Shown in pieces: positions 12,116-55,212 of a DNA stretch of 64,000 nucleotides (position 1 is the stretch's first letter; each line of letters starts with the position of its first letter). The notes below the pieces were generated by a model, which was given only the letters and a program-made list of their open reading frames with translations, ran no database searches and was not told where the DNA came from. The stretch covers positions 186,001 through 250,000 of the forward strand of contig NIVC01000884.1 in the NCBI GenBank assembly GCA_002269645.1. Direction: 5' to 3'. This DNA comes from Macrostomum lignano (lineage: Eukaryota). The position numbers and the translations under genes are program-made.

Positions 12116-13859
12116 CAAGGACCACTAGAAGTTACCGTTGTATCAGGACGCAACACTCGTAAATATTGCAAAATTATTTGAAGGCCCGCTTGTTTGCATT
12201 GCAGCTTAACTTTAAATGCTCATAACTCCGGACTGGTTGCACTTTGAAAGATAATTTTTTCGCCAGGTTGCTCGAAATTTTGTTCTCTTAAACATATAAC
12301 AAACTTTAGCGCTATATCTACATGTAGGAGCGGCGGGCGTACAGTAAAGTAACGGCAATACACAATATTTCATTGCATACAAAATGAATAAAGTTTCAGT
12401 TACTTCAATTATTGCCTCCTAGTCTCGATAAAGTAGCAGACCATACAACATACTCTGTAGTTGGAAGCTTTATAAAGCGGATAATCTGTACAGAGTTCAG
12501 TGGGCTGCAAAGGCGTCACTTCACTATCAAAAACCAGTATTATAAAAATCAGAAAGGCGCAGTATTTTTGAAATCTTGGCACACCTGCCCAACAAGAACT
12601 CCAACATTCATAATCTTTCTTTTGCTGTTCAAATGAACAGTAGGAGTCAAATAAAACTTGTACAGTAGCACAACTTTATTTGTATTTAAGTTCAATTTCG
12701 ATATAAAAACCTCTAATTTCATAAAGAATACATGCGAAATAAGAAAACAAAGTCAAAAAGCAACAATAAGCCAATGTATTTTAAACTTAAACTTTCATAC
12801 CAATCAAGTCATTCTGTCTAAAAAATCTCTTAAAATCACAAAGCATAATGAATCACAGTACTTCACCATGTTAGCTCAGCAGACATTGATGGATGAACAT
12901 CTAGATTGGATGATTTGGCACACCTGAAATGAAACCAATTTGGGATTAATAAATACCTGCTTTGCAATGAACAACAAAACAAGCCTTGTTTTGAGTAAAT
13001 GAATACATTTTCTCTATAACCTAATATGTATGAAACAAAGCTTAAACCATCAAATCACAGCTGGTTTAACTAACATGAAACTGACAAACTAACAAATTAA
13101 AGTACATTGAATATGGATATAAAGGTAATGATAATAAGAAACTGTAGTTAAACTAAACAAACATCTCAACCGTCAATCTGCAACATTTGTAAACAATATG
13201 GTTCATAAAATAATTGTCAATGACAAGACTAACAACCTACTTATTGCACTGATGAAAAACAAGATAAGGTTTACAATCTTGTATAAAGATAGTTTGAACA
13301 ATAGCTTTAGATAAGTCTATAAATGGTATACATCCGGCTATACAGAATTGTCTTAGGCCTAATAAATAAGGAAAGAGAATTATACACATTTAGACTTCAA
13401 AGTATATTCAATTGTGAATTTATATACTCTAATATATTGCTGTATTGACAACAAAAAACTATAACAAACTATAAGCCATGTTGCTAGGAATGCTAGTTAA
13501 ACAAACAAATAAATCTTACACATTGTTTACACATTGTCTATAACACTGTGTAAAACTATATTTGTCTTTAGACTAAAATGTTTTTTTCCTATTTGTCATT
13601 CTAATGTATAGTAAAAAATAGTACTCCTTTACCCTTGACTTCAGTTTTGAACATATAACTTCAGCTTAGTGAAATGATATAATTAATCTAATCCAAATCA
13701 AATCTAATCTAATTCTATAATTCTATTCAGTATAGCAAAAATGAGTGTCTTGTTCTAAAGTGGTATTGGTAAATGATTTACTTAAACAGCATAGCTCAAC
13801 CAATTTTGAAGCATTTAACTTCACTTAGCTATAAAATCAACAATCAGGTAACTAGAATA

Positions 13860-14320: not shown

Positions 14321-17248
14321 TCATTCATGTTGTAGTTTACGTAGTCTACGTCCATTGGCATTGAAAGTATGCCGAGGTATCTCTGATGACTTACGCACTA
14401 GGCCTTTGAAAAAAGTATTTGCAAGCCGGCGAGCAATAGATGATAGTTGATCCTTTTGAATATCAAAGTCAACAAGTGACTCAAAAGTATATAGAAAAAG
14501 GCGAATTGTATGGCTGGCACACTTCAGTGACATCATACCAAAGAGTGAGTAGCACATTGATGCATAGACAATTAGCCATTCAGGAGGATGTTGCAATTTT
14601 CCTCTAGATAAAAGGTTAGTAAACTCACTATCTGGTGCCTGTACAGTTTGAGCAGGAAATACTTCAGGCACTTCTAAGGACTCCTTCATTGAAATATAGC
14701 CGCAGATATAATACAGAGTTACTCTTTCATCCAGTGATACCTCTTCAATTTGGCCTGGCAAATTATCAATTAACTCAATCTCTTCAAATGACATTGTGCC
14801 AGTACAACAGCTGTCTTGTGCTTGGCAGTTCATAGATGGTGCATCAATTTGCAGGTCTGCATACAGTTGCATTCTTTGTAGGCGGGCTGAGAGCATTATC
14901 TGCTCAACTGATATATAATAGCAGCCCCCATGTCCTTGTCTGTAAATAGAAAATTCTCCTTCAAGTCTGTCTGATTGAAGCTCACCTAGAGAATGTGTAT
15001 AAATAAAAATTAAATGACTCACTTACTTTGAAAAGGTACTTTTATCTAAATCAACTTTCACTACTTACTGGTATACACTTATTCTTACCTAATAACACAT
15101 AGGAAAATTTACAGTCTTTTAGTAAATATCTGCTCAGTTCAACCAGCCCTTTTGATGTCTGTATAGCAGCCTTGCGAGTTTCCGAAGTAAGCGATCGTAA
15201 ACGTCCAGGTCCTCGACCTCCAGGCATCCGTTCTAATACTTCGGCAAACATACTTAGTAACTTAAGATTGCTTGACTCTTCAGAGAAAATTGGACTACGT
15301 GTATCATCATGCAGCTGCATATGAGATGTTGTTGATTTTACATTAACCACTTTCCAAAACTTAAGGATAAAATCTATAAAAGTGGCTGTACCATAAAACC
15401 CATGAAGTTGAAGAGCAGCAATTGTCTTTTCATTAAAAACTTGAAGAACTAAAAATACCTTCTGACGTTCCAATGGAGATGGATGGCATGATTGTGGACT
15501 AAGTGTTGTAGGTCGAACAACATGAAGCTGTGATTTCTGCTCAATATCTATAATATCATTCCAATTAGCTTGACAAATAGGCCCTTCTGGTAAAAGTTGA
15601 AAGTCAATAATCTTTGAGCCTTGAGTATACCAATTATTGCGAATGTTTTTCAATAGATGAACTGTGTCATATAATAGAAACAAAGGTAGGCTTTGATCTA
15701 CTGGGTTAATTGCCTTCCAGGGTGCATCCATGTTGTCAAACTGAAACTTCTGGTAGCAGATACGGTTGATGAAATGATTGTCACAAATAAGACTTACAAC
15801 CTGCCCATTGCATTGATGAATAACCCTAATTAGTTTTACAATTTGTTGGAACAAGAAGTTGGGTTTTAAACTATAAACAGGAATCAGCCTAGCCACAAAT
15901 GATTGGGCTCCCATGAATGGTTTTATCATTAAGGCTAGGATAGTACGAGCCAATTGTGTTGGTACATCCTCAGCATAGCCAACTGTATGTCCACCTCGGA
16001 AACGAGCTGATGGTAAAACGTATACTTCATCAAAAATAACAGTACACAACTTCTGTGACGGAGTCAGTTGGCCAAAATGTGTGCTCACAATGGTCTTACA
16101 ATCTAAGTCTGTTCCAACATTACCAAGACCACCAAGATGACGCTTTAGAGTTGTAGCATGCGGTAGAGTCATAAGGTGCCTTGCTGACCGATAAGCATTA
16201 GTGCCAGATAGGAAGATCTTCATGGCTGTTAAAATGTCTGATGAATTATAATAGTGCCCATTTGATGATAAGGACAATTCCAGTTGACGAAGAAGAAACA
16301 GTTGCTTGGAGCTACATGGTAACTTTCGAATGGTTGCCACACTAGACTTGATCTCATCACTAATTGTCAATGGGGCCTGTTTGACCCTATTGACAATAGC
16401 TTCAAGTTGACTAAAGCGTTCTAGTTTCCATTGAAATCCTAGGAGGTCAGTTACCTTGACAACACTGTTCTGTCGATAGGCTTCAACAGTGAAGTCACTA
16501 TTAACACAGATATAGAATTCAACTGCACGTTCAAATATGGTCAAGAACAAAACATTCGAATCCGAAACTTGCACAAGCCAGCCAACTAAGAAGGGAAGAG
16601 CTAAAGCAGCAACTTGGAAAGCATTCCACGAACAGATTCGATCGGCTTTGTTAAATGCAGGCATTTGATCTGGTTCTTGACCACGCTGTGACAGGGAAAT
16701 GCCTCTTTTAACAGCCTGCCTTGACTTCTCTAAAAATATTTTTGAATTACAAACAACAACACATTATAAAAGGCAATCCAACTTTACCTGAGCTATAGGT
16801 TATATAACATGCTATATGATAGGGCATATTGTTAACTTACTTGGATATGTTTGGCGCATATCACTTTTCTTAGCAAATTGAAAAATAGAAGGTGGGTCCC
16901 TAGGTCTTGTGAACTGTTTGACTTTTACCATGGGGGCATCATCTTCCCAATGCTTTCGGCAAATGCCCATGAACTTAGAGACATTCTACAATTTATATAT
17001 AAACTTTAGAAAGTTAATTATTTTTACTATACATTTTAATTATTCAAAAATTATATTGATCTCAATTATTTACTTTTAAAGAATAAAGTAACTCATTAAA
17101 AGGTCATTTTATTCACCTTAATAGACGATGGCAATGCATTAATCCATCGGCAATGCTCAGCCTCATCTTTAGGAAAGCCAAATATAGCTACCTTCTCTTC
17201 ATTGCGATAGTTACTTCTACAAGATGGTATGCAACATTTCATGGGCAT
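14321..17248 (-). CDS. THAP-domain P-element (THAP9-like) transposase, 4 exons, about 860 aa
   Basis: Exons 17248-17117, 16985-16841, 16729-15089, 14985-14321 join in frame through GT-AG introns (2583 nt). THAP motifs CCIPSC...FGFP...W...CRKHW...PSIF; catalytic-region motifs FDEVY, CDNH, YDTVHLLKNIRNN, QSDRLE; no stops. Confidence 0.9.
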
Positions 17249-18516: not shown

Positions 18517-19451
18517 AGTCAGTGCCAGTCACTCCAATCTCAATCTATAGTCAGTGAAACTCACTCCAATCTCAATCTATAGTCAGTGCCAGTCACTCCA
18601 ATCTGAATCTACAGTCGGTGAAAGTCACTCCAATCTCAATCTAGAGTCAGTGCCAGTCACTCTGATCTCAATCTTCAGTCAGTGTCAGTCACTCCGATCT
18701 CAATCTACAGTCAGTGCCAGTCACTCCAATCTCAATCTATAGTCAGTGAAACCCACTCAAATCTCAATCTATAGTCAGTGCCAGTCACTCCAATCTCAAT
18801 CTATAGTCAGTGCCAGTCACTCCGATCTCAATCTACAGTCAGTGAAAGTCACTCTGATCTCAATTTATAGTCAGTGCCAGTCACTCCGATCTAAATCTAT
18901 AGTCAGTGCCAGTCACTCCGATCTCAATCTACAGTCAGTGAAAGTCACTCCAATCTCAATCTATAGTCAGTGCCAGTCACTCCGATCTCACAGTCAGTGA
19001 AACTCACTCCAATCTCAATCTACAGTCAGTGTCAGTCACTCCAATCTCAATCTACAGTCAGTGAAAGTCACTCCAATCTCAATCTATAGTCAGTGCCAGT
19101 CACTCCGATCTAAATCTATAGTCAGTGCCAGTCACTCCGATCTCAATCTACAGTCAGTGAAAGTCACTCCAATCTCAATCTATAGTCAGTGCCAGTCACT
19201 CCGATCTCACAGTCAGTGAAACTCACTCCAATCTCAATCTACAGTCAGTGTCAGTCACTCCAATCTCAATCTACAGTCAGTGAAAGTCACTCCAATCTCA
19301 ATCTATAGTCAGTGCCAGTCACTCTTATCTCAATCTACAGTCGGTGAAAGTCACTCCAGTCTCCATCTATAGTCAGTGCCAGTCACTCCAATCTCAATCT
19401 ATAGTCAGTGCCAGTCACTCCAATCTCAATCTACAGTCAGCGCCAGTCACT
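18517..19451. repeat. 32-bp satellite array, right part
   Basis: Same unit as 11401-12115. Confidence 0.97.
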
Positions 19452-19771: not shown

Positions 19772-20094
19772 TCAGCCGCTCGACCTGACGTTGCCCTTCT
19801 GGTCAGACTCTGCAAGTCAGCGGTGTGAAATTGTCTCAGTCAGGTGCAGCCAAAAACAGGAAATCTAAAAGCAGAAATGCTCAAAGCAGCAGTGAGTCAC
19901 TCACCTCTGACCCGCTCCATCAGGTCCGGATTGGTGATGACGCAGCTGATGCTGGGCTGCACGAGAACCCTGGCTGAGGCGCCGACCATTCGGCGTAGCA
20001 TCGCCTTCGACTCTTCGCTCTCGCCCTTGTAGTAGAAGAACCTGAACGGGTCCTTGGCGACTGGCCTGGCGGATCTGGCTTGCTGGCTGGACAT
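19772..20094 (-). CDS. Unknown 75-aa protein family, copy G0 (inverted)
   Basis: Exons 20094-19905 and 19809-19772; 95-nt GTGAGT...TTGCAG phase-1 intron; protein MSSQQARSARPVAKDPFRFFYYKGESEESKAMLRRMVGASARVLVQPSISCVITNPDLMERVRESDQKGNVRSSG. Confidence 0.75.
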
Positions 20095-20449
20095 TGCTAG
20101 TGATTTGAGTTGCTGCAACAATTGCTGCTTCTTGAAGAAGATGATTCTTCAGTTTTCTGATGAGAGTTCAAAGTCTCGAACAGAATTTATTTATGCTGAA
20201 GCGATGGCGAGTCTTCGGCTGCACCTCGGAAAAACCAGCGCACTTTGCAATGTGTGAGCGCGGGAATTCCGTGGGTTATAAAGTACGCTCGTAGCTACGT
20301 AAAAATAGAAACAGCTGTAATGACTGACTGTGGTAAGTATTTTGCTCTTCAATTTTCCCTTTTGTTTCTTTTAAGCACTGTCAACTGGAGACAATTAGTG
20401 GTAGATGACTTTGGAATCATTCGGAAAGACCAAGAGATTTGCAGGGTGA

Positions 20450-20650
20450 CAGACAGACACTCTCCCATTCTCAGGGACGGACACTCTCCCATTCTCAGGG
20501 ACAGACACCCAAGCTCCCATTCTCAAGGACAGACACCCTAGCTCCCATTCTCAGGGACAGACACCCTAGCTCCCATTCTCAGGGACAGACACCCAAGCTC
20601 CCATTATCAAGGACAGACACCCTAGCTCCCATTCTCAGGGACAGACACCC
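20450..20650. repeat. 28-bp minisatellite
   Basis: CTCCCATTCTCAGGGACAGACACCCAAG, about 7 copies. Confidence 0.9.
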
Positions 20651-20873
20651 TATGATTCTTAGATTCACAGAGGTGCTTGTTGGCCCCTTAATCACAAATA
20701 ATTCCTTTTTGCTTTGTCTGTCAAATTGGAAACATTCTAAAGCAGATTTGCACAGTTTGTATTCGGTGAAAATTGCATGCAAAATTTGGTCGCTAATTAA
20801 GAAAAAGCACAAAAAATTATCTGGACTTCTTGAATTCACCAAATTGAATTAAATGGTAGATCAAATATTATTC

Positions 20874-21462
20874 AGCAAAGGATGTGAGCCATAAGGCTTG
20901 ATGTCAGTATTTGTGGACCGCTCGAATCATCAATCTGTTTTGCCAGAGGAGCTCCCACTACTTCCGGTTGAGTCTTTTGGCTTAGTCTGCTCCTGCTGTT
21001 GCTTCTCTTGCTCTGCTTTCTCCTTCTTTGCTGAAATAAGTTTGATTGTTTCTTGGTACGTCGATCTGTGCAAAAATGAACGGATTATATCAGGACAAGA
21101 CAGGACAGGAGAGGACAGGACAGGAGAGGACAGGAGAGGACAGGACAGGACAGGACAGGAGAGGACAGGACAGGACAGGACAGGACAGGACAGGACAGGA
21201 CAGGACAGGACAGGACAGGACAGGACAGGACAGGACAGGACAGGACAGGACAGGACAGGACAGGACAGAATGGAAACCAACGCATTCTACCTGCATCAAT
21301 CTTGGCAATGAGCTCAGGATTAGTAAAAATTGCAGACGGCGTAGGCTGAACCAGTTGAGTAGCAGTTGCTGCAGTATTTCTCCTGAGCTCCTCCTTGGAC
21401 TCCTCGCTTTCACCTGGCATATAGAAATCTTTGAACGGATCGCGTGGTTGCATACCAGCCAT
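20874..21462 (-). CDS. Diverged paralog F of the 75-aa family
   Basis: Exon 21462-21291 (MAGMQPRDPFKDFYMPGESEESKEELRRNTAATATQLVQPTPSAIFTNPELIAKIDA) aligns without gaps to family exon 1 and ends at a phase-1 GT; the intron holds a (CCTGT)n array; acceptor TTTTTGCACAG at 21066. Exon-2 frame and end are uncertain. Confidence 0.6.
21090..21268. repeat. (GGACA)n microsatellite in the paralog F intron
   Basis: Direct reading. Confidence 0.97.
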
Positions 21463-21751
21463 TCTGCTGTCCTTCGTCAGGGCGTGAACAGCGAACTAAC
21501 GAACGACTGTCTAAGCTTCTTGGCCCAGGCAGCTGCAGTGCGTATTGAACCCACTTGAAACTGGGCACTACCTCGTATTCTGGTCCCACTGTGCGCTATC
21601 TGAGACCTCATTTCGGTGAGTGACGCCGGTGCCGTGTTGGGGCGAACACAATTCACTCGGCTTGGGGAGAAACAGGGCACTGCCTTGTAGAGTCTGGCCT
21701 TGCAGTCTTGCTGTTGCATTGAGATAATAAAGTGTCTTTATAAATTCATAT

Positions 21752-21968
<217 letters not shown>

Positions 21969-22504
21969 CATAGGCAGCACCCTGTGTATATTACTAGGTA
22001 ATACCCTGTTCTATTTTTAGCACACCGTGGATCATTGCAATGCTCGTATCTACAGCCTTATGGTACAAGGTAGTACTTAGTCCTTATTTTATTTTTGGCT
22101 ATGATCCAATCCAGAAATGGCTACTGCCTTGTAGGAATGCTATCAGCTTAGCGGCTTCTCGTTAAGGCCATTGAAGTGCACTATAGGCTTTATATGTTTC
22201 TAATAACTGAGATGCCGAGGCTCAAAGACGATGCTGACATTTTAAGTCAGATAGAACTTGTGCTTTGAGGGCTCGTGCTTTTTGCTGTAAACGGACCAGT
22301 AGTTTTTCTTTAAGAAACAAACTATAACAACTTTTAAAGCAATTTTTTCAAAGCCAAGTACTCTATGAGCTGGCTGTGTTAGTTATGACATCATTTTATA
22401 AATTCGAAATTCTTGGTAAGTGTGGGCTAAAGCACTTCCAACCCAGACTTTAGGATTCACAGATAGCCCTTCAGGAATTTCCTGAGGTGAACTCAGACCA
22501 TTCG

Positions 22505-23405
22505 GACCAGGAGACTTTCAAACCCTTCATCATGAAACTTTCAAATCCTTCATCATGAAACCTTCAAGCCCTTCATCATGAAACCTTCAAGCCCTTCATC
22601 ATGAAACCTTCAAGCCCTTCATAATGAAACCTTCAAATCCTTCATCATGAAACCTTCAAGCCCTTCATCATGAAACCTTCAAGCCCTTCATCATGAAACC
22701 TTCAAGCCATTCATCATGAAACCTTCAAATCCTTCATCATGAAACCCTCAAGCCCTTCATCATGAAACCTTCAAACCCTTCATCATGAAACCTTCAAATC
22801 CTTCATCATGAAACCTTCAAACCCTTCATCATGAAACCTTCAAATCCTTCATCATGAAACCTTCAAATCCTTCATCATGAAACCTTCAAATCCTTCATAA
22901 TGAAACTTTCAAGCCCTTCATCAGGAGACCTTCAAAGCCTTTATCATGAAACCTTCAAACCCTTCATCAGGAGACTTTCAAACCCTTCATCATTAAACCT
23001 TCAAGCCCTTCATCGGGAGACCTTCAAACCCTTCATCATGAAACCTTCAAACCCTTCATCAGGAGACCTTCAAACCCTTCATCAGGAGACATTCAAACCC
23101 TTTATCATGAAACCTTCAAACCCTTCACCAGGAGACATTCAAACCCTTTATCATGAAACCTTCAAACCCTTTATCATGAAACCTTCAAACCCTTCATCAT
23201 GAAACCTTCAAACCCTTCATCAGGAGACTTTCAAACCCTTCATCATGAAACCTTCAAACCCTTCATCAGGAGACCTTCAAATCCTTTATCAGGAGACGTT
23301 CAAACCCTTTATCAGGAGACCTTCAAACCATTCATAATGAAACCTTCAAACCCTTCATCAGGAGACCTTCAAACCCTTTATCAGGAGACCTTCAAACCCT
23401 TCAGC
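22505..23405. repeat. 23-bp minisatellite
   Basis: AAACCTTCAAACCCTTCATCATG with AGGAGAC variants. Confidence 0.95.
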
Positions 23406-23667
23406 AGATAACCAAGGCTATTTAAAACACAAGAATTTGGTGTAGAACTGTCGCCAGCTGCTACTGACCTCACAGGGTACTTCCTGGTTCTATTTTTAGA
23501 CCTTACGCTTTCCAGACGTGGGTTTACCAGTGCACTATAACACTAACGCAGTAGTACCACTTATTCGCGCTTCTGACGAAGGTACTACCGCGTTTTGTAT
23601 AGAAATATTGATTAGTAAATATGAAAATGCACCATCATTATCCCATGAGTCGATCCCACGAAACACA

Positions 23668-24350
23668 GAGAGTGACCTCAGAGACTATCCAATGAAACAC
23701 AGAGAGTGACCTCAGAGATTATCCCATGAAACAAAGAGAGTGAACTCAGAGTCTACCCCATGAAACACAGAGAGTGACCTCAGAGTCTACCCCATGAAAC
23801 ACAGAGAGTGACCTCAGAGTCTACCCCATGAAACACAGAGTGACCTCAGAGTCTACCCCATGAAACACAGAGAGTGACCTCAGAATCTACCCCATGAAAC
23901 AAAGAGAGTGACCTCAGAGTCTACCCCATGAAACACAGAGTGACCTCAGAGTCTACCCCATGAAACACAGAGTGACCTCAGAGTCTACCCCATGAAACAC
24001 AGAGTGAACTCAGAGTCTACCCCATGAAACACAGAGTGACCTCAGAGTCTACCCTATGAAGCACAGAGAGTGACCTCAGAGTCTACCCCATGAAAAACAG
24101 AGTGACCTCAGAGACCATCCCATGAAACACAGAGAGTGACCTCAGAGTCTATCCCATGAAACAAAGAGAGTGACCTTAGAATCTATCCCATGAAATACAG
24201 AGAGTGACCTCAGAGTCTATCCCATGAAACAAAGAGAGTGACCTTAGAGTCTATCCCATGAAACAAAGAGAGTGACCTTAGAGTCTATCCCATGAAACAC
24301 AGAGAGTGACCTCAGAGTCTACCCCATGAAAAACAGAGTGACCTCAGAGA
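23668..24350. repeat. 32-34-bp minisatellite
   Basis: GAGTGACCTCAGAGTCTACCCCATGAAACACA(GA). Confidence 0.95.
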
Positions 24351-24765
24351 CTATTCAACAAAATGCAGCGCGTGAACTTCGTGCAAGAATTGGTTAATCA
24401 AGGAGAAAGCACTCATAAGCTATATAAAATACTGAATATTGCAAAAACATTCTCGTTACTATTGCAACAGCCTAAATGTTTACTAAAAAATCGTACCCAG
24501 TCAGAAAAGTCGCTACCCAGTCAATTAATGCATAAAAATAAATTTTTCGCCATAGCTATATCTACTACAAGGTAGTACACGATAGTTTTCAGTAGGTCGT
24601 ACCCTGTAACCCAGCTCTGAGGGCGGAGTGTACATTCTATGCAGTGTACACCGGGGAACCCTTAGGATGCTATTTTTAGCAATTACGAGTCGTAATTGCT
24701 AAAATTACTCTGCTCTTGCAGAACATGCAGGCTTTTACGCGGTAGAACCTAATAAGGGAAATGCT

Positions 24766-24773
24766 TATAAATA
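24766..24773 (+). promoter_or_regulatory. TATA box of family copy A
   Basis: TATAAATA about 105 nt upstream of the ATG at 24874. Confidence 0.55.
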
Positions 24774-24873
24774 CGAGATCTCCCACCGACTGTAAATCCA
24801 TGAACCAGCTCCAGAAGACTCAGAAGCTTCAATTCAAAGCCACCGCAAATTAATTTACAAGCCACCGTCAACA

Positions 24874-25196
24874 ATGTCCAGCCAGCAAGCCAGATCCGCC
24901 AGGCCAGTCGCCAAGGACCCGTTCAGGTTCTTCTACTACAAGGGCGAGAGCGAAGAGTCGAAGGCGATGCTACGCCGAATGGTCGGCGCCTCAGCCAGGG
25001 TTCTCGTGCAGCCCAGCATCAGCTGCGTCATCACCAATCCGGACCTGATGGAGCGGGTCAGAGGTGAGTGACTCACTGCTGCTTTGAGCATTTCTGCTTT
25101 TAGATTTCCTGTTTTTGGCTGCACCTGACTGAGACAATTTCACACCGCTGACTTGCAGAGTCTGACCAGAAGGGCAACGTCAGGTCGAGCGGCTGA
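24874..25196 (+). CDS. 75-aa family copy A
   Basis: Exons 24874-25063 and 25159-25196; AATAAA at 25364; same protein as G0. Confidence 0.78.
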
Positions 25197-25519
25197 GCGC
25201 CGGAGGACATCCCGGATATGACGTCATGCCTGTTTGTGCATAGATTTCAAATGACAATAGCTTACAATTGAAACGCATTGAGTCAAATAAATGCTTTCTC
25301 TGCTCGAGCTGAGCACTGCTCTGTACAGACTCGGACTCATCTCTGCTTATAAAATGTATGAACAATAAATTCCTTGGCCTGGGTAACATTGCTTTTATTG
25401 CAGTATTGGATTTTCAATACGTCAATAATTTCTTCTTTTCGCTTTCTTGGCAACAAGTCCGTTATTCTAAAATACTTTCTAAAAGTTTTAGCTTGTAGTG
25501 AAAAAAAATAATTGGCGAA

Positions 25520-25917
25520 GTCACTGGCACTTACTGTAGATTGAGATCCGAGTGACTGGCACTGACTGTAGATTGAGATTGGAGTGACTGGCACTGACTC
25601 TAGATTGAGATTGGAGTGACTGGCACTGACTGTAGATTGAGATCGGAGTGGCTCGCACTGACTATAGATTGAGATTGGAGTGACTGGCACTGACTATAGA
25701 TTGAGATCGGAGTGACTGGAACTGACTATAGATTGAGATTGGAGTGACTGGCACTGACTGTAGATTGAGATCAGAGTGACTGGCACTGACTGTAGATTGA
25801 GATCGGAGTGGCTCGCAATGACTTTAGAATGAGATTGGAGTGACTGGCACTGACTGTAGATTGAGATCGGAGTCACTTTCACTGACTGTAGATTGAGATC
25901 GGAGTGACTGGCACTGG
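25520..25917. repeat. 32-bp satellite, reverse orientation, in the 3' flank of copy A
   Basis: Reverse complement of the 11401/18517 unit. Confidence 0.95.
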
Positions 25918-26329
25918 TTCAGTCCCTACTAGCAGCATTCAAGCGAGTCAGCTACAGAATTTCTTATCACCAGACAACACCTTGCTAGCTGCTTGCAATC
26001 TCTGAGATGCGCGTATCAATAAATGTTTCGATTATCCACATGCTTACTGTGCCTATAATAAATGGCTACATGCTCTGTTGAAACGTTGCTAAGATCTCTT
26101 TGCTGCATAATTGCTCAAATTAGCTACGTAGTTCGACTTGTTGTATCGAGAGACATCTGGAAATGTAGCATTGGAAACTTTCGTCTGACTCATTGCAACG
26201 CATCAGCTTGGATTTTAAGTTGGGGCACCCCAAACCCCTGCTCCATGCACAGAGCTCGTATTCACCCACAGGAAGGCTGTAAGGAAGTGCGCATTTAGTT
26301 AACTGCGCTCGTGTGAAGGTAAGTCTCCC

Positions 26330-26685
<356 letters not shown>

Positions 26686-26985
26686 CGAACCTTGCATATC
26701 TCTTGGTTTATTCATGAGTTTCGCTGAATGAAAGCGAAAATTGCAGAGCGAAAAATTTGCCACGGTTAGTCATTACAGCTGTTTCTATTTTTAGCTACTT
26801 CGCGCCCACGGAATTCCCTCGCCCACACATTGCGAAATTCGCGGGTTTTGCCGAGGTGCGGCCCAAGACTCGCCATCGCTTCAGCATAAATAAACTGAGT
26901 TCACGACTTTGAACTCTCATCAGAAAACTGAAGAATCATACTCTTCAAGAAGCAGCAAGTGTTGCAGCAACTCAAATCGCTAACA

Positions 26986-27308
26986 ATGTCCAGCCAGCAA
27001 GCCAGATCCGCCAGGCCAGTCGCCAAGGACCCGTTCAGGTTCTTCTACTACAAGGGCGAGAGCGAAGAGTCGAAGGCGATGCTACGCCGAATGGTCGGCG
27101 CCTCAGCCAGGGTTCTCGTGCAGCCCAGCATCAGCTGCGTCATCACCAATCCGGACCTGATGGAGCGGGTCAGAGGTGAGTGACTCACTGCTGCTTTGAG
27201 CATTTCTGCTTTTAGATTTCCTGTTTTTGGCTGCACCTGACTGAGACAATTTCACACCGCTGACTTGCAGAGTCTGACCAGAAGGGCAACGTCAGGTCGA
27301 GCGGCTGA
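26986..27308 (+). CDS. 75-aa family copy B
   Basis: Exons 26986-27175 and 27271-27308; appears identical to A. Confidence 0.78.
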
Positions 27309-27631
27309 GCGCCGGAGGACATCCCGGATATGACGTCATGCCTGTTTGTGCATAGATTTCAAATGACAATAGCTTACAATTGAAACGCATTGAGTCAAAT
27401 AAATGCTTTCTCTGCTCGAGCTGAGCACTGCTCTGTACAGACTCGGACTCATCTCTGCTTATAAAATGTATGAACAATAAATTCCTTGGCCTGGGTAACA
27501 TTGCTTTTATTGCAGTATTGGATTTTCAATACGTCAATAATTTCTTCTTTTCGCTTTCTTGGCAACAAGTCCGTTATTCTAAAATACTTTCTAAAAGTTT
27601 TAGCTTGTAGTGAAAAAAAATAATTGGCGAA

Positions 27632-28029
27632 GTCACTGGCACTTACTGTAGATTGAGATCCGAGTGACTGGCACTGACTGTAGATTGAGATTGGAGTGAC
27701 TGGCACTGACTCTAGATTGAGATTGGAGTGACTGGCACTGACTGTAGATTGAGATCGGAGTGGCTCGCACTGACTATAGATTGAGATTGGAGTGACTGGC
27801 ACTGACTATAGATTGAGATCGGAGTGACTGGAACTGACTATAGATTGAGATTGGAGTGACTGGCACTGACTGTAGATTGAGATCAGAGTGACTGGCACTG
27901 ACTGTAGATTGAGATCGGAGTGGCTCGCAATGACTTTAGAATGAGATTGGAGTGACTGGCACTGACTGTAGATTGAGATCGGAGTCACTTTCACTGACTG
28001 TAGATTGAGATCGGAGTGACTGGCACTGG
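27632..28029. repeat. 32-bp satellite, reverse orientation, in the 3' flank of copy B
   Basis: Duplicate of 25520-25917. Confidence 0.95.
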
Positions 28030-28441
28030 TTCAGTCCCTACTAGCAGCATTCAAGCGAGTCAGCTACAGAATTTCTTATCACCAGACAACACCTTGCTAG
28101 CTGCTTGCAATCTCTGAGATGCGCGTATCAATAAATGTTTCGATTATCCACATGCTTACTGTGCCTATAATAAATGGCTACATGCTCTGTTGAAACGTTG
28201 CTAAGATCTCTTTGCTGCATAATTGCTCAAATTAGCTACGTAGTTCGACTTGTTGTATCGAGAGACATCTGGAAATGTAGCATTGGAAACTTTCGTCTGA
28301 CTCATTGCAACGCATCAGCTTGGATTTTAAGTTGGGGCACCCCAAACCCCTGCTCCATGCACAGAGCTCGTATTCACCCACAGGAAGGCTGTAAGGAAGT
28401 GCGCATTTAGTTAACTGCGCTCGTGTGAAGGTAAGTCTCCC

Positions 28442-28813
<372 letters not shown>

Positions 28814-29113
28814 CGAACCTTGCATATCTCTTGGTTTATTCATGAGTTTCGCTGAATGAAAGCGAAAATTGCAGAGCGAAAAATTTGCCACGGTTAGTCA
28901 TTACAGCTGTTTCTATTTTTAGCTACTTCGCGCCCACGGAATTCCCTCGCCCACACATTGCGAAATTCGCGGGTTTTGCCGAGGTGCGGCCCAAGACTCG
29001 CCATCGCTTCAGCATAAATAAACTGAGTTCACGACTTTGAACTCTCATCAGAAAACTGAAGAATCATACTCTTCAAGAAGCAGCAAGTGTTGCAGCAACT
29101 CAAATCGCTAACA

Positions 29114-29526
29114 ATGTCCAGCCAGCAAGCCAGATCCGCCAGGCCAGTCGCCAAGGACCCGTTCAGGTTCTTCTACTACAAGGGCGAGAGCGAAGAGTCG
29201 AAGGCGATGCTACGCCGAATGGTCGGCGCCTCAGCCAGGGTTCTCGTGCAGCCCAGCATCAGCTGCGTCATCACCAATCCGGACCTGATGGAGCGGGTCA
29301 GAGGTGAGTGACTCACTGCTGCTTTGAGCATTTCTGCTTTCAGATTTCCTTTTTGGGTTGCAACCTTACTGAGGCAATTTCACACCGCTGACTTGCAGAG
29401 TCTGACAGAAGGGCAACAGCAGGTCGAGCGGCTGAGCGACTGGAGTGTCAGGATAGCTCGAGATATTACGCATGTCTATTTATGAGTGACAGCTTCGGAT
29501 TGAGGAACCAAGTGTTCAGCTTTTAG
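29114..29526 (+). CDS. 75-aa family copy C with a 1-nt deletion in exon 2 (extended C-terminus, pseudogene or sequence error)
   Basis: Exon 1 29114-29303 intact; exon 2 from 29399 reads ESDRRATAGRAAERLECQ...FSF to TAG at 29526. Confidence 0.6.
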
Positions 29527-30239
29527 ACCAGTGTTCATTGCTTGTCTGCTCAGGCAAATTTTGAGCAAATTCAACATCTCACTACACACTATGATTGCTT
29601 TCTGTGTTGTATAGATATTTTATGCTTGCATATGTGTATAATTTATGATTCTTTCGAACTAATATTAAGCATTAGAAAATGAAAGAAAAATATAAATAAA
29701 AAAGCTATTAAATCAAAGAGTTTTGTTAGAATTTTCATTACGTCTTCACGAGTACAATACTTTATTCTCTTTGATCTGTTCGAGTTTATCACGGGGAGTT
29801 CCAATTACACTTGAGCAGGAAGTGAACTTCACTTTCTACTCCCAAATGGCACTTTGAGCTGGCCCTGTTCAAGTAAGGATCCTTATGGTCTCGCAGTCCT
29901 TATTGTTTCACGGGTCAGTTTATTACTTGTTAATTTAAACTGCAACACAGGTTAAATTGAATTAAATTCATCGACTAAGGCTGCGAAAAATGGTAGAGTG
30001 TATTTTCCAGATTGATAGTTCTACTTTAAATAAGCATTCGCAGTTAGCAAGCTTTTTATCGCTTACTAACACGTTCATCGATTAAATGTTCTGATAAGAA
30101 AAGCGTAAGTGAACACCCAAAACCCATATGGTCAAGTTTTCTCAGAGTTTCAAAGAGGGAGTTTAGCTGTTGATGTTAAGTTTAATCGACTGTCATATGC
30201 TAATAGCATAAAATGAGGGTTTAATTAGTCTGGTATTGA

Positions 30240-31127
30240 GTTTGTTGGCTGTGATTGGATACTCGTGCTAGCATGGCTTTGGATGTCACAGTGACATATT
30301 CTATGGGTCAAACCCTGGCTTTTGTATTAGCGATGGTTGTCTAATTGGATGCTCGTAGCTGGCTTTGGATGTCAGAGTGAAATAGTCTATGGGCCAAACC
30401 CCGGCTTTTATAGCAGCGATGGTTGGCTGTGATTAGATACTCGTGCTAGTATGGCTTTGGATTTCACAGTGACATATTCTATGGGTCAAACCCTGGCTTT
30501 TGTATTAGAGATGGTTGTCTGTGATTGGATACTCGTGCTAGCATGGCTTTGGATGTCACAGTGACATAGTCTATGGGCCGAACCCAGGCTTTTATAGCAG
30601 CGATGGTTGGCTGTGATTGGATACTCGTGCTAGCATGGCTTTGGATGTCACAGTGACATAGTCTATGGGCCGAACCCAGGCTTTTATAGCAGCGATGGTT
30701 GGCTGTGATTGGATACTCGTGCTAGCGTGGCTTTGGATGTCACAGTGACATAGTCTATGGGCCGAACCCAGGCTTTTATAGCAGCGATGGTTGGCTGTGA
30801 TTGGATCCTCGTGCTAGCAGGGCTTTGGATGTCACAGTGACATAGTCTATGGGCCGAACCCAGGCTTTTATAGCAGCGATGGTTGGCTGTGATTGGATAC
30901 TCGTGGCTGCATGGCTTTGGATTTCACAGTGACATATTCTATGGGTGAAACCCCGGCTTTTGTATTAGCGATGGTTGTCTGTAATTGGATATTCGTAGCT
31001 GACTTTGGATGTCACGGTGACATAGTCTATGGGCCGAACTCAGGCTTTTATAACAGCGATGGTTGGCTGTGATTGGATACTCGTGCTAGCATGGCTTTGG
31101 ATGTCACAGTGACATAGTCTATGGGCC
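30240..31127. repeat. 92-bp minisatellite, about 9.5 copies
   Basis: Period measured as 92 (30605 to 30697); contains the palindrome ATGTCAC-A-GTGACAT. Confidence 0.95.
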
Positions 31128-31726
31128 AAGCTTTAGTCAGGAGTTCATTTCTGTGAGTATGATAATATTCATTTAACTGCAGAAATGGTTAGGGTTAGTT
31201 TTCATAAACCGAAAAAGGCTGCTGGTATTATTGCAGCATTTTGACAGGAACTTCATGGGGCAGGGGCACTCGCCAGGAGCTTCTATGAGATGACGCTGTA
31301 TTGGTTTGAATTCTCCCTGTGTGACTAATCACACAGTCCACAGCTTAACCCAATTGGTCACAACAGCCGTCACACATTAGCTACTACCAAATTTAGAAAT
31401 AAAAAAGCAAGCAAGTATTCCATGCAAGTCCAGAGAGATTCCAAGCAAGGCTTGATGGGGTTTTTTGCATTGTCAAAAGTGCCCAATCAGCTGCGTACAC
31501 TGATAAGTTGCACATTATTGCTTAAAAACAGCACACTAACCCGCATACCTGCGCGCTATGCTAAGATCTAAAAATAGCATATGAGGGTATCCCATGGAAT
31601 TCTACGGTTTATCAACTGGGCCCCTATATGTTATAGGTTATAGCATGGAAGATTCTGCTGCCAAAAGCAAGCTAAAGCAGGACGCACTGTTTTAAGCACT
31701 AATTATCTTCAGTTCAACCGCCAGCA

Positions 31727-32061
31727 ATGTCCAGCCAGCAAGCCGGATCCGCCAGGCCAGTCGCCAAGGACCCGTTCAGGTTCTTCTACTACAAGGGCGA
31801 GAGCGAAGAGTCGAAGGCGATGCTACGCCGAATGGTCGGCGCCTCAGCCAGGGTTCTCGTGCAGCCCAGCATCAGCTGCGTCATCACCAATCCGGACCTG
31901 ATGGAGCGGGTCAGAGGTGAGTGACTCACTGCTGTTGCTTTGAGCATTTCTGCTTTCACATTTCCTGTTTTGGTTGCACGTGACTGAGAAAATTTCACAG
32001 AGTCCTTTGACTTTGACTTTCAGAGTCCAATCAGAAAGGCAACGACAGGTCGAGCGGCTGA
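31727..32061 (+). CDS. 75-aa family copy D
   Basis: Exons 31727-31916 and 32024-32061; R7G substitution; exon 2 ESNQKGNDRSSG*. Confidence 0.75.
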
Positions 32062-33282
32062 GCGGCCGGAGTGTCAGGATAGCTCGAGATTTGATGACGT
32101 CATGCCTGTTTATATAAGTGACAGCTTCGGATGGAGGAGCCAAGTTAAGCTTAAAAGCTTAAAAAAGCGTTTTTGTCTGTCTGCTAAGAGAAATCTTGAG
32201 CGAATTCAGTACCAGACTACACTAGAATTTCTTTTGGTGCTGTTTAGATAAAATTATATATTTGATATTTTTAATGAAAGAAAAACACTTCGTATAAATG
32301 CAGGAAGTCTAATAAATAAAAAATATAAATCTTGCGCTAATTTATGAAGCCAATATGAAGCTCTTGAGACCAGTTGCATTTATGTCTCTGATGAATTTTG
32401 CTAGAAATTCCATTGCTCGTATGTCTCTATCGTCTTCTCCTTGAGTGACGGTAAGTGTTTTAAAATTCAACTTAGAATTTATCTCTGTATACCCTGCACA
32501 TGGCACTTTCAAGAGGTCCTGTTCTCGTTAGGTATCTTTGATCTCGCAGTCCTCGTTTCTCAGGCCGCTTGATGGTTGCTAATATAAACTGGGACTGTGC
32601 TGGATTCTTGATAGGAAATTTCTGGGACATTTTTGGTTGAGTACCGTTTGAAGCTGTAGTAAAAGTGATCAATGCCTTGATGAAGCATTGCTTTTGCTAG
32701 TAAGAACAAAAAGCAATGAACGGACTACGACTGATATACGACACTGATTTCTACGATACCAACTTCAGGATCGCACTGCATAACATGTCCCCTTTTCGAT
32801 AAGAGAGGAGTTGTGCATGTAAGAAGAAATTATCAAGTGAAGGTCATGGAATGCGAATAAACAAAGCCATCAAAGTGCCTTGTCAGTTAGAACTCCAATA
32901 CAATTAATTGAACACTAACAGATCATGGCGCAAAACAATCAGGTGCACGCCGCTCTCCAGCGCGGTGCAAGCCCAGCTTCCTGTTGGTCATTCATAGGCT
33001 GCTCATTCCCGTCCGGAACCTACATAGCGGCTTCCTCCTTCTCACTGCCAGGTGTAGCGTGGCGATTTGGTTGTTGCTCGCCAAGTCGCAATTTGTCCTC
33101 AGCCAACAGCCAGCAGGAAGTATTGTGTCCTCGCGACATCAGGAACTTTGCTTGGGAGGAAGAAGTACCAGCATTGGACTTTCCCGCCGGCCTCTTACCG
33201 CGCTACAGAGAGGAGTTGCGGTGATGCAGAAGCACTGTAGGAAAGGCTGTCACAGTGAGTCAGTCGCTGAGTCTCAAGCAAT

Positions 33283-33790
33283 CTCTGACCAGACGGTCTC
33301 AAGCAATCTCTGAGCAGACGGTCTCAAGCAATCTCTGAGCAGACGGTCTCAAGCAATCTCTGACCAGACGGTCTCAAGCAATCTCTGAGCAGATGGTCTC
33401 ACGCAATCTCTGAGCAGACGGTCTCAAGCAATCTGTGAGCAGATGGTCTCAAGCAATCTCTGAGCAGACGGTCTCAAGCAATCTCTGACCAGACGGTCTC
33501 AAGCAATCTCTGAGCAGACGGTCTCAAGCAATCTCTGAGCAGACGGTCTCAAGCAATCTCTGACCAGACGGTCTCAAGCAATCTCTGAGCAGATGGTCTC
33601 ACGCAATCTCTGAGCAGACGGTCTCAAGCAATCTCTGAGCAGATGGTCTCAAGCAATCTCTGAGCAGACGGTCTCAAGCAATCTCTGAGCAGATGGTCTC
33701 AAGCAATCTCTGAGCAGACGGTCTCAAGCAATCTCTGACCAGACGGTCTCAAGCAATCTCTGAGCAGATGGTCTCAAGCAATCTCTGAGC
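33283..33790. repeat. 25-bp minisatellite
   Basis: GAGCAGACGGTCTCAAGCAATCTCT, about 20 copies. Confidence 0.96.
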
Positions 33791-34296
33791 GAACAAACTT
33801 TAGTCAGGAAGTTCATTTCTGTGTGCGGAAGAATAAGTTCAAGGGTTAATTTCATAAATCGAAGCTCGAACCAGTAGCCGATATTTTTGTCGAACTATTC
33901 AAGTCTGCTGGAAGTCTTGCAGAATTTTATTGCAGCCAAACTCATGGGGGCGGGAAGATTACCCCTGTTCACAATAGCCGAGCTACCAAAATTAGAAAGT
34001 AAAATTTAGAACGAGCAGCGAGCAGTATGCTCCGAGAAATTCCATACAAAGCTCGATGGGGTAGACTGCTAAGACTGCACATTATGCTTAAAAACAGAAC
34101 ACTAACCTTGAATATGACTCATAATAGCATATAAGAGGGTATCCCAAAGAATTCTGCCTGGTTTCATCAACTGGGCTCTACTGTACACATGTATATATAT
34201 GTATATATATATATATAGAAGATTCTGCTGCCAAAAGCAAGTCTAAGCAGAGCGCACTGTTTTAAGCACTAATTATCCTCAGTTCAACCGCTAGCA

Positions 34297-34619
34297 ATGT
34301 CCAGCCAGCAAGCCGGATCCGCCAGGCCAGTCGCCAAGGACCCGTTCAGATTCTTCTATTACAAGGGCGAGAGCGAAGAGTCGAAGGCGATGCTACGCCG
34401 AATGGTCGGCGCCTCAGCCAGGGTTCTCGTGCAGCCCAGCATCAGCTGCGTCATCACCAATCCGGACCTGATAGAGCGGGTCAGAGGTGAGTGACTCACA
34501 AATGCTTTGAGCATTTCTGCTTTTAGATTTCCTGCTTTTGGCTGCACCTGACTGAGACAATTTCACACCGCTGACTTGCAGAGGCCGGTCAGGAGGGCAA
34601 CGTCAGATCGAACGGATAA
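34297..34619 (+). CDS. 75-aa family copy E
   Basis: Exons 34297-34486 and 34582-34619; exon 2 EAGQEGNVRSNG*; stop changed TGA to TAA at the same position; several synonymous changes. Confidence 0.78.
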
Positions 34620-36680: not shown

Positions 36681-37478
36681 TTAATCAAACTGATAATTGC
36701 GCAGAAGTTCAATAAGACTGCGCAATCCAACCAGATAATTGTTGTCAAGGCAACCGTTGCCAGGCACCGCGTGCGTAAAATCGATCATAGCCGCTAGCGC
36801 AATTGGCGCCCTGCCGCAATTATTAGCGTTTGAGTAGCGCGAGGTGGACTCGGAGTTTAGCGACGGGTCTATGGAAGACTGCGACTGAGGGGAAGATGCA
36901 AACTGGACCTTTGGCGGCGCTTCCGGTGCCTCATCCGCTGACAGTTCATCAATGTCATGCCTTTGTGCATGAGCCGATAACTGCGGGTCTTTGTTACCTG
37001 CAGCACCATCAGACTCTTGGATTCCTGACGAACATGAGTCTTTGTTACCTGCAGCACTTTCACACTCTTGGATTCCTGACGAACATGAGTCTTTGTTACC
37101 GGCTGCAGGCGACGCTGAAGGGTCCGTGGCATTGGTCTCTCCGTACAGTTGCGGTTGCGGCGACGCTGGAATCTCTGGCGAGCCGCTATCGTCAAGAGAC
37201 GAAGCCTCGGACGACACATCGTCCAGAGCAGCCGGGCAGGACTCCACCGCCAGCAGCACGGAGCTGGCGTAGAAATGGTACAGGGTCTGGCGCTCGAACC
37301 ACGCCTGCAGGCGCTCCAGCTGGTTGAGCAGCTGGCGAACTGCTCGGCGACGGTGGACGCCACGAGGCACCGATGACAGAAAGGGAGGCATCACGTCGGA
37401 TTGCAGGCGGTCGGGCGTCACCTGAGGCAGGTAAGTTTTAGTTAGAAATAGATTAGATCGATAGATAGATAGATAGAC

Positions 37479-37549
<71 letters not shown>

Positions 37550-37981
37550 GCAGGACTCGCACCTTGGCCCAGTGCCGCTTTCCCAGCTGCTCGTAGGACT
37601 GCCGTTCCTGTCGCCAAGCCCGCAGCCCGGTGACCAGGAAGCCGACCCTGGCCCGGTGCTCGTACTTCGCCAGCTCCACCGAACGCTTCCTCTCAGACGC
37701 GTCCGGTTCGTAGCTCTGCGCGCCCATCTTCAGATCCATCACCGACGGCTGCACAAAGTCGGCCAGCAGGTCGTCCAAGCGAAGGTAGCGCCGGCCAGTG
37801 GCGGCGTCGATGTGCACCCCGCGGAAGGTTGGCAGAAGGCAGCGCAGCTCGGCAAGATCGGGATCGCGACAGGTAGCAACTTTTTCATTGAACACTTCAC
37901 GGTAGAATTGGATTTCGCGATCTCCTTTAGGCGCCCCCTGGACCGGCTTGTAGATGCAGCGCTCGTCGTGGGAATGCAGCA
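36681..37981 (-). CDS. IPMK: Inositol polyphosphate multikinase-like kinase (N-terminal exons unresolved)
   Basis: IPK motifs PSVMDLKMG (PxxxDxKxG), SSVLL, MIDFTH, DNNYLVGL; G.REIQFY. Exons 37981-37563 and 37421-36681 around a 141-nt GT-AG intron. A probable 58-nt intron (38039-37982) restores VGILLHSH, matching the VGIL motif recalled from human IPMK. Confidence 0.85.
37447..37550. repeat. (GATA)/(GACA)n microsatellite in the IPMK intron
   Basis: Direct reading. Confidence 0.95.
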
Positions 37982-39599
37982 CTAAAGGTGTCATGGGGAG
38001 TACGGAATTCCCACAATGATTTCACACAAATGAACTCACAAATGCCAACAATGAGCGCTGTGGGCGCAATGCTTCAGGCATCTCAATAATGGCACAACAT
38101 AAACTGGCGCTACACTGAGGGTGCCTTACTAGGACAGTTATGAGAGTAAGTACGAGAATTAAGTAAAGTAAGGCATTTGCTGTCGCGCATTTTTTTGGAT
38201 CCGCTACTGCGGTTGAGAATTCCCAGAGGAAATAAATACATTACGAGACAATGTCTAAGAACCATGCAGCTAGTAATGAGTGACCTGTTAATGGACAGAC
38301 AATCCTTTTAGATAATTTTAGAAAAAAAATCGTAGGAAACAAGCGAATTGAAAGAATTCTTGAATAATTATTGCTTCACTCAAAATTTCAGGCATGAAAA
38401 TCGATTAGGAAGTCTATCTGCATACACTAATAAATAATAATTGAAAATTAAAAATACACAAAACTGTATGCAAAACTGCACACAAAACTGTATGCAGATG
38501 ATAAATTATTCATAAATGGATATATGCCTTTACATCGAATTTATCAAATAAAAATAACTTACATTGTGGCTTTGTCTTGACAGGATTTTGCTCTAAAATG
38601 TTGAACATTATTTATTAAATTTATATAGTTTATGCTTGGATTGGAAATGTAATAAGGAGTATGTTTTAATTGAAATGGACTTACCACATCTTTGTGAATA
38701 CCCGTGACCCGCAACTTGATGCTCATAAATGGACAAATCTTTTGGAAGTAGATGCAGTTCTGGCTCCATGAAGAATTTCATAAAGCAGAAATCTAACAGA
38801 ATTATATAAATTATTTAGTGATTCTCATTCTCACTAACCAGCCTGGGCTAAGAGTAGGAACTTGTCTTTACTAAAACCCATAAGAAATATTCAATAAAAT
38901 AAAGCTTACACACTACTTCACTTATAATAAAGTATTTTCTAAAACTCCGATGATAACAATGATATAAAAATAACTAAAACGATATTTATACCAGTACAGT
39001 AGTGATTGTTACAGAAAAATTTAATTATCACCTCATTCGAGCGCGAGACAAAGAAAAAATGTACTGTATTTAGAATTAACTTTAAGCTCTATGCGTTTTA
39101 AATTATATTATTTGTTCGTGTTTTCCGCAAGAAACTTTTGTAGTCTAGTCATTAGCCATTCTCCCTCAGCCGGATGCCGGATCTCATATTTTAATTTTTG
39201 TCAGATAATTAGACATCAAATTCGTGCGAACAATGTTTAAACACACATAAAAATATCTGAATTTTAGGTTGTAGCTAATAATAATGTTTTAATTTTCTTT
39301 GTCCACAGAAAAGTGGCAGTAAATTAGGTATAAATCTGAACAAAGGCTAAAAATCCCTAACTTAGTTTTACTCAGTGCAATTATAAAAAATTATTTGCAT
39401 ATTTTAGTTTCCGTTTCGAGGAAACAGTTCCGCCCATTCATTTATTAATTTATTTTAGTTTCATTCAATTTTTTCATTTTTTTTTCAATTTTTGTTACTG
39501 TGTAAAGTACCTTTCAGTTCCTCAGTTTGTAGGCATCTTAGTTTTTTAATCGTTTGAAACTTTAATTTCATGCCTACCTTAGCTTTTCTTAGCTGTAAA

Positions 39600-55144: not shown

Positions 55145-55177
<33 letters not shown>

Positions 55178-55180
55178 TAG

Positions 55181-55212
<32 letters not shown>

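Follow-up and report, generated by a model that had tools for sequence, protein, structure and literature searches.

We examined a 64-kb window of the genome of the flatworm Macrostomum lignano (all coordinates below are window positions), in which a first-pass annotation had proposed a cluster of seven small spliced genes for an unrecognized microprotein. The window carries six near-identical two-exon genes for a protein of 75 amino acids (aa), one on the minus strand (G0) and five on the plus strand (A–E), together with a divergent minus-strand paralog, F (Table 1). Only six members had been named in the original proposal; the seventh does exist and is F, which encodes 90 aa. Exon 1 measures 190 nt in every 75-aa gene and is followed by a phase-1 intron of 95 nt (107 nt in D), with the donor GTGAGT and the acceptor TTGCAG (TTTCAG in D), and by an exon 2 of 38 nt, which is short by one C in copy C. 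Successive start codons of A–E are 2112, 2128, 2613, and 2570 nt apart, each copy has A or G at −3, and upstream of every copy the frame is closed by an in-frame stop with no ATG between that stop and the start codon. AATAAA or ATTAAA lies 89–250 nt past the stop codon, giving each copy its own poly(A) signal, TATAAAT occurs at −108 of copy A, and the unspliced open reading frame (ORF) terminates in RVRGE-stop. The exon, intron-phase, splice-site, and spacing coordinates given for the six copies in the first-pass annotation were all present, as were the purine at −3, the downstream AATAAA, the TATA box before A, and the VRGE-stop ending of the unspliced frame; the closed upstream frame, claimed for B, holds for every copy. 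The full 75-aa product, MSSQQARSARPVAKDPFRFFYYKGESEESKAMLRRMVGASARVLVQPSISCVITNPDLMERVRESDQKGNVRSSG, includes the peptides DPFRFFYYK and VLVQPSISCVITNPDLMER. The tblastn E-values of ~1e-39 per copy exclude a chance origin of the 75-aa copies. Paralog F was found by tblastn of the window at 53% identity and has the same architecture of two exons and a phase-1 intron; its intron lies one codon downstream of the site used in the 75-aa genes, with the phase conserved.

Most of these gene models already exist in public records. The part of the window that was compared (12385–35196, 22.8 kb) is identical to contig NIVC01000884.1 of the Mlig_3_7 assembly (GCA_002269645.1; locus L003), and the window therefore runs along that contig from about position 186001. 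On this contig GenBank annotates five of the seven array genes (A, B, D, E, and F), leaving G0 and C unannotated. For D, E, and F, the proteins that we obtained by splicing are identical to those deposited, and the 107-aa model deposited for A is reproduced when an upstream GTAAGT...CAG intron is removed, the extra 32 residues coming from a 5′ exon. The corresponding hypothetical-protein records include PAA75435, PAA75437–PAA75439, PAA71356, and BOX15_Mlig003009g2 (F), with UniProt entries such as A0A267FC64. The Mlig_3_7 annotation was produced entirely by mapping RNA-seq data and de novo transcriptome assemblies to the genome and calling ORFs with TransDecoder (Wudarski et al. 2017; PMC5730564). 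Because the identical deposited models derive from this RNA-seq-based annotation, the predicted junctions appear to be transcript-supported; an assemblies index held no transcript contigs encoding the exact family proteins. Donors and acceptors of the array genes also agree with the splice consensus of the species, which is GT[G/A]AG and CAG (PMC8629364). The earlier interpretation of these loci as spliced protein-coding genes is thus borne out, since their junctions yield exactly the proteins of the RNA-seq-derived annotation, while the description of an "undescribed gene family" does not stand: the gene models entered the public record as hypothetical proteins with the 2017 Mlig_3_7 release, and the sequence itself is not new.

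At the level of sequence, the decisive evidence of coding is the comparison of A with F, that from within the 75-aa type being thin. Across 51 aligned codons, A and F are identical at 63, 63, and 24% of first, second, and third codon positions, respectively (Fisher p = 6e-6), and 18 of the 26 identical residues are specified by different codons. The proportion of non-synonymous differences (pN) was 0.37 and that of synonymous differences (pS) 0.95, which is saturated, and both alternative frames are interrupted by stops. Saturation of third positions together with conservation of amino acids requires long-term selection on the protein sequence. An estimate of dN/dS (the ratio of non-synonymous to synonymous change) had been suggested as a check in the first-pass annotation; within the 75-aa type it comes down to tiny counts.

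We compared the array with two further loci of the same assembly, L001 (NIVC01001170.1) and L002 (NIVC01000418.1). Both are collinear with the array of the window, and the same inositol polyphosphate kinase (IPK) gene bounds all three, anchoring them as collinear copies. The M. lignano assembly is redundant because a large chromosome is duplicated in the DV1 line (PMC5730564), and the three contigs are homeologous or redundant copies of the locus. Each locus has one F, and the 75-aa gene is present in six copies in the window, five in L001, and five in L002. An additional 5′-truncated 75-aa copy, seen only in NIVC01000418.1 (~15553–15720), begins at residue 8 after unrelated sequence. By their flanks, the full-length copies fall into types whose members are orthologous between loci (A; a type with the 5′ flank shared by B, C, and G0; D; and E), and between types neither the 5′ flank beyond about −14/−18 nor the 3′ untranslated region can be aligned. 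Copy C carries a 1-nt deletion in exon 2 (GACCAG to GACAG) that extends its frame to a 105-aa product ending at 29526; the lesion is also present in L002 and absent from L001, and copy C may be a pseudogene or a variant. The earlier statement that transposon hallmarks are missing was upheld, in that no transposable-element (TE) ORF lies within the 2.1–2.6-kb units and the family occurs on the three collinear contigs only, not dispersed.

Variability is distributed very unevenly along the gene. Among the 15 copies of the three loci, 6 of 190 sites vary in exon 1 (two synonymous and four non-synonymous), compared with 25 of ~95 in the intron (p = 1e-8) and 13 of 38 in exon 2. Synonymous sites of exon 1 are likewise nearly invariant (about 2 of 45 variable; p = 0.002 relative to the intron), and the constancy of exon 1 therefore exceeds the effect of protein-level selection alone. 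Copies D and E of the window share the change A19G (R7G; positions 31745 and 34315), which their flank-defined orthologs in L001 and L002 lack, and this shared change reads as a direct footprint of conversion between neighboring paralogs. The GC content at third codon positions (GC3) is 0.84 in exon 1 of the amplified type and 0.42 in F, with flanks at ~42% GC; a raised GC3 in the amplified type is the pattern expected of GC-biased conversion. Copy B is a hybrid, with a 5′ flank of C type and a 3′ flank of A type, and lies inside a 2.1-kb tandem duplication whose extra copy is missing from the L001 and L002 contigs. Unequal crossover inside the gene body should leave just such a hybrid gene in a near-perfect duplication. 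The A/B duplication would stem from a very recent event of this kind or else from an artefact of assembly. We conclude that copy number shifts by unequal crossing-over, with the gene body as the recombination substrate; the near-identity of exon 1 between copies whose flanks have long diverged is best accounted for by gene conversion in concert with purifying selection.

Tandem repeats occupy much of the intergenic spacers (25519–33790). One 32-nt minisatellite follows G0 (18517–19451), A, and B, and recurs ~7 kb upstream of the array (about 11404–12119); the remaining spacers hold unrelated arrays (23-, 34-, 92-, and 25-mers and (CTGT)n).

Table 1 Features of the array and its surroundings in the 64-kb window. 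For the 75-aa genes, the first position of exon 1 (of the coding sequence, CDS, in copy A) is that of the start codon.
Feature	Position	Strand	Remarks
Copy G0	exon 1 20094–19905, intron 19904–19810, exon 2 19809–19772	−	75 aa; no GenBank annotation; TTGCAG ends 18 nt before ATG
Paralog F	exon 1 21462–21291, intron 21290–21031, exon 2 21030–20930	−	90 aa; phase-1 intron with (TCCTG)n; = GenBank BOX15_Mlig003009g2 (P0008)
5′ exon of the annotated 107-aa copy-A model	22385–22415	+	ATGACATCATTTTATAAATTCGAAATTCTTG, then GTAAGT donor; joins acceptor AACCAG, next exon from 24809
Copy A	24809–25196; CDS 24874–25063 and 25159–25196	+	75-aa product = P0004; GenBank 107-aa PAA75435
Copy B	exon 1 26986–27175, exon 2 27271–27308	+	from ATG on identical to A; 5′ flank of C/G0 type; GenBank partial 49 aa, PAA75437
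Copy C	29114–29526; exon 1 29114–29303, exon 2 from 29399	+	exon 1 intact; no GenBank annotation
Copy D	exon 1 31727–31916, exon 2 32024–32061	+	107-nt intron; tail ESNQKGNDRSSG; = GenBank PAA75438
Copy E	exon 1 34297–34486, exon 2 34582–34619	+	tail EAGQEGNVRSNG; TAA stop; = GenBank PAA75439
Perfect tandem duplication	24874–29113	+	A-to-B unit 2112 nt, B-to-C unit 2128 nt; sole difference a 16-nt (TGTC)4 indel at 26557
Minisatellite, 32-mer	25519–25916, 27631–28028		tandem-repeat scan (TRF)
(CTGT)n microsatellite	26329–26682, 28441–28810		tandem-repeat scan (TRF)
92-mer array	30244–31127		tandem-repeat scan (TRF)
25-mer array	33271–33790		tandem-repeat scan (TRF)
Inositol polyphosphate kinase	36681–37994	−	Pfam IPK, E = 2e-32; immediately downstream of array
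TE remnants	2822–5265	−	RVT_1 ORFs, RT-associated RNase H fragment, and TNP-like (P-element/THAP9-type) transposase RNase H-N domain (remark covers the three rows of TE remnants)
TE remnants	8367–8819	+	
TE remnants	15051–16664	−	

The 75-aa type and F share a core of ~45 residues that contains the motifs [KR]DPFxxFY, GESEESK, LRR, AxA, LVQP, and TNP[DE]L, and the C-terminal tail is variable among family members. The amplified type has a mass of 8.4 kDa, a pI of 10, a polar, basic N-terminus, and a single cysteine. Paralog F, in which six residues precede the core, owes its acidity (pI 5.2) to a K/E/Q-rich tail. The highest 15-residue hydropathy in the family proteins is 1.3, a value at which neither a signal peptide nor a membrane segment would be expected. 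We also considered a mitochondrial presequence for the N-terminus of the 75-aa type, but F does not conserve it. The homology and profile searches proposed in the first-pass annotation retrieved only M. lignano family members: no homolog outside the species was found by word-indexed phmmer, by an exhaustive HMMER run over 1.84 billion cluster representatives, which returned solely the family itself and F, or by profile search of 5.8 billion clusters. At E ≤ 10, Pfam (five members, hmmscan), NCBIfam, PADLOC, and sequence searches of the PDB with a single sequence and with the family profile gave only noise, and Foldseek searches of the PDB with two AlphaFold2 models gave no match below E = 0.4. 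Matches to designed helical-repeat proteins (PDB, E = 0.003) and to Tla3_C (E = 0.05–0.16) were dismissed as chance. Nothing above noise came from Pfam, PDB, Foldseek, or hhalign; the earlier view that no domain is recognizable held up, and the family belongs to no described protein family. Structure prediction, also proposed as a check, gave models of low confidence. Only a helix at residues ~27–44 reached a pLDDT of ~77–84 in AlphaFold2, and the core probably contains one amphipathic helix at about these residues; the two models as wholes conflict, one being beta-alpha-beta-alpha and the other all-helical, with mean pLDDT values of 59 and 64.

Three proposals would give the protein a more familiar identity, and we consider each of them very improbable. 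Two members, A0A1I8HSH8 (P0003) and A0A1I8H8P9 (P0007), are named "TIR domain-containing protein" in UniRef, near-identical siblings being called "Uncharacterized protein", and the product could on this basis be a truncated TIR microprotein that retains the N-terminal beta-A/alpha-A/beta-B/BB-loop half of the domain and acts as a non-catalytic decoy or regulator of TIR signaling proteins. By eye, FRFFYYKGES is like the plant TIR start DVFLSFRGED and ITNPDLMERVRES is like IPGELCKAIEES, and the low-confidence beta-alpha-beta-alpha model would be a possible TIR-like start. The TIR fold is a flavodoxin-like five-stranded alpha/beta domain of ~130–150 residues with a BB loop, and in NADases the catalytic Glu follows beta-C; the M. 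lignano protein, with 75 aa and a ~45-aa conserved core, is half the length of a TIR domain and lacks the region for the catalytic Glu. The family also fails every sequence, profile, and fold test that was run. No TIR family was found in Pfam, PADLOC, or NCBIfam at E ≤ 10, and no TIR chain was among the PDB matches at E ≤ 10, whereas a search with a true TIR domain retrieves 27 distinct PDB sequences at E ≤ 0.001. Alignment to a plant TIR alignment by hhalign had 0.6% probability over 14 columns, BLASTP gave no alignment, and Foldseek yielded no TIR. A plant TIR HMM (--max), calibrated against composition-matched shuffles, scored reported members at ~−2.2 bits compared with a shuffle median of ~−1.8 and left two members unreported. 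A TIR identity (Pfam PF01582/PF13676; PROSITE PS50104) was rejected on the hhalign, BLASTP, and shuffle-calibrated HMM results, and the fact that only two of the near-identical members carry the UniRef name suggests a borderline automatic call, perhaps from the PROSITE PS50104 profile. An origin of the core from a fragment of the Hsp70 nucleotide-binding domain (the ...YKGE...PEEISAMVL...AVITVP... segment) appears just as remote. Its basis is that the top PDB profile matches were Chaetomium Ssz1-type Hsp70s (SEIATRYLRRLVGAASEYLGKKVTSAVITIPT, ~45% identity over 32 residues), but these had E = 0.6–1 in a database of just 177,635 sequences, the PDB's many remaining Hsp70 chains went unmatched, as did Pfam HSP70, and the exhaustive HMMER search contained no Hsp70; we rejected the resemblance as non-significant and due to chance. 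Fast-evolving tandem orphan genes often encode secreted peptides of a seminal-fluid, adhesive, antimicrobial, or toxin-like kind, and the lineage restriction, tandem amplification, and fast-evolving C-terminal tail of the present genes are in keeping with such a role. The proteins themselves make it hard to credit: an N-terminal hydrophobic segment is absent, the N-terminus of the 75-aa type being polar and basic and F having only its six residues before the core, and there is only the one cysteine.

A more serious challenge is that the repeat might be transcribed yet functionless, an ORF carried on a satellite-rich segmental repeat whose uniformity reflects only recent duplication and gene conversion. 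Several observations weigh in this direction or otherwise against a functional protein. The first-pass annotation had taken the synonymous changes of copy E (AGG/AGA twice, TAC/TAT, GGC/GGA) and its TGA-to-TAA stop swap as a sign of coding constraint; these changes are all present, but they are weak on their own, the coding sequences of 13 intact copies from the three loci differing by 7 synonymous and 13 non-synonymous changes. Omega among the recent 75-aa copies is about 0.3–0.55 on tiny counts, with pairwise values of about 0.3–0.45 on three to six changes of each kind; one copy type (C) carries a frameshift, in two loci, and the near-invariance of exon 1 at synonymous sites could have another cause, either codon-usage selection or an RNA-level function. 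The array is embedded among minisatellites, the proteins are without a homolog outside M. lignano, and the structure predictions conflict at low confidence. The identifiers Mlig001698, Mlig011580, Mlig006971, Mlig032648, and Mlig003009 occur in no searchable full text, and the first four were not found in the supplements of M. lignano papers, of which the copies were possibly incomplete. Finally, the binding function that we propose below is inferred only. We nevertheless think it unlikely that the repeat is functionless. Third positions are saturated relative to the old paralog F while amino acids are conserved, start codon, frame, intron phase, and stop position are retained in 13 of the 15 full-length copies, and exon 1 is ~8 times less variable than the adjacent intron. 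A separate alternative concerns the mode of expression. A–E all lie on the plus strand and F and G0 both on the minus strand; the start codon of F and the 5′ exon of copy A are ~920 nt apart in opposite orientations, and a divergent promoter region may serve both F and A. It is conceivable that A–E form one polycistronic unit driven from this ~0.9-kb region and resolved by spliced-leader (SL) trans-splicing at a CAG 14–18 nt before each ATG. In M. lignano, trans-splice acceptors follow the motif [T/C]TNCAG, and operons are recognized by intergenic distances below 1 kb, which repeats are reported to inflate (PMC8629364). A [T/C]TNCAG-like sequence stands just before the ATG in five of the six 75-aa copies, although the presence of so short a motif is not evidence of its use, and homology between copy types starts exactly there: G0, B, and C have TTGCAG at −18, D has CTTCAG at −14, and E has CCTCAG. 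There is no such motif in copy A, which has the annotated far-upstream 5′ exon. These resemblances to the SL trans-spliced operons of the species (PMC8629364), namely same-strand neighbors, repeat-rich spacers, and the motif before the ATG, stand beside differences. The spacers of ~1789, 1805, 2291, and 2235 nt still measure ~1037, 1037, 1407, and 1715 nt, above the 1-kb limit, when TRF arrays are subtracted and TE content is left in. Every copy type has an A/T-rich TATA-like element ~90–108 nt before the ATG, every copy has its own poly(A) signal, and splicing at −14 would put the ATG with which the SL ends out of frame in D and E. We regard an operon as possible but doubtful. An Rfam search, a tRNA scan, and a search for SL-RNA genes found nothing in the window, and a sigma-70 promoter and terminator scan was set aside as irrelevant to a eukaryote.

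On balance we favor, as the more probable interpretation, a protein-coding orphan family restricted to M. lignano and held in a tandem array that undergoes conversion and unequal crossing-over, and we infer for its product the role of a soluble intracellular binding protein. Such a protein would not be an enzyme; the aromatic [KR]DPFxxFY motif and the helix after it would bind its partner, and the multiple gene copies would serve dosage. A more specific version, which we offer as a speculation with little chance of being correct, is that the core is a new, Macrostomum-born interaction module whose dosage matters in proliferating stem or germline cells, possibly by binding PCNA, or a different hub protein, in the manner of a PIP box, and that exon 1 is homogenized by selection for many identical copies. 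The PIP box that binds PCNA has the consensus Qxx[ILMV]xx[FY][FY]. The [KR]DPFxxFY motif is conserved in both paralogs and fits only a degenerate PIP box, with no Q and with F at the aliphatic position.

Histone and polyubiquitin arrays are the classical tandem families under concerted evolution, and the M. lignano array shares with them the head-to-tail copies, unequal crossing-over, homogenized coding sequence beside diverging spacers, and raised GC3. It differs in being tiny (5–6 copies) and species-restricted and in that homogenization is limited to the ~200 nt of exon 1. As an orphan, the family is ordinary for its host. Between 35 and 44.5% of M. lignano genes are Macrostomum-specific (PMC5816591), and the present family is one of them. 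Like the Mlig-sperm1 and Mlig-stylet genes (PMC5816591), it has no homologs outside Macrostomum or free-living flatworms and is known only from the transcriptome-derived Mlig_3_7 annotation; it has no sequence relationship to those genes, is much smaller, and is tandemly amplified, and Mlig-sperm1, unlike the present family, comes with expression and RNA interference (RNAi) data.

As now known, this is a hypothetical-protein family of a type very common in M. lignano. If the protein is functional, it would be a clean case of a young microprotein confined to one species, kept and duplicated to give two subtypes before its amplification. The locus also offers, on a small scale and in nature, an example of unequal crossing-over and of conversion over short tracts, with an apparent GC bias, followed over three homeologous or redundant copies in a neopolyploid genome. 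Its host is a model flatworm with RNAi and transgenesis, in which one double-stranded RNA against the invariant exon 1 would silence all copies, and the significance of the family would grow if expression or RNAi tied it to stem-cell or germline biology.

Beyond the array, reverse transcriptase (RT) and transposase ORFs lie at 2.8–9 kb and 15–16.7 kb. Plus-strand exons of a P4-type phospholipid-translocating ATPase (flippase) occupy 52963–57054, with matches to Cation_ATPase (54517–55707) and PhoLip_ATPase_C (56386–57054; E = 1e-43). A 676-codon open frame at 41393–43423 on the plus strand, with ~33% GC and no Pfam match, may be a TE or a low-complexity artefact.

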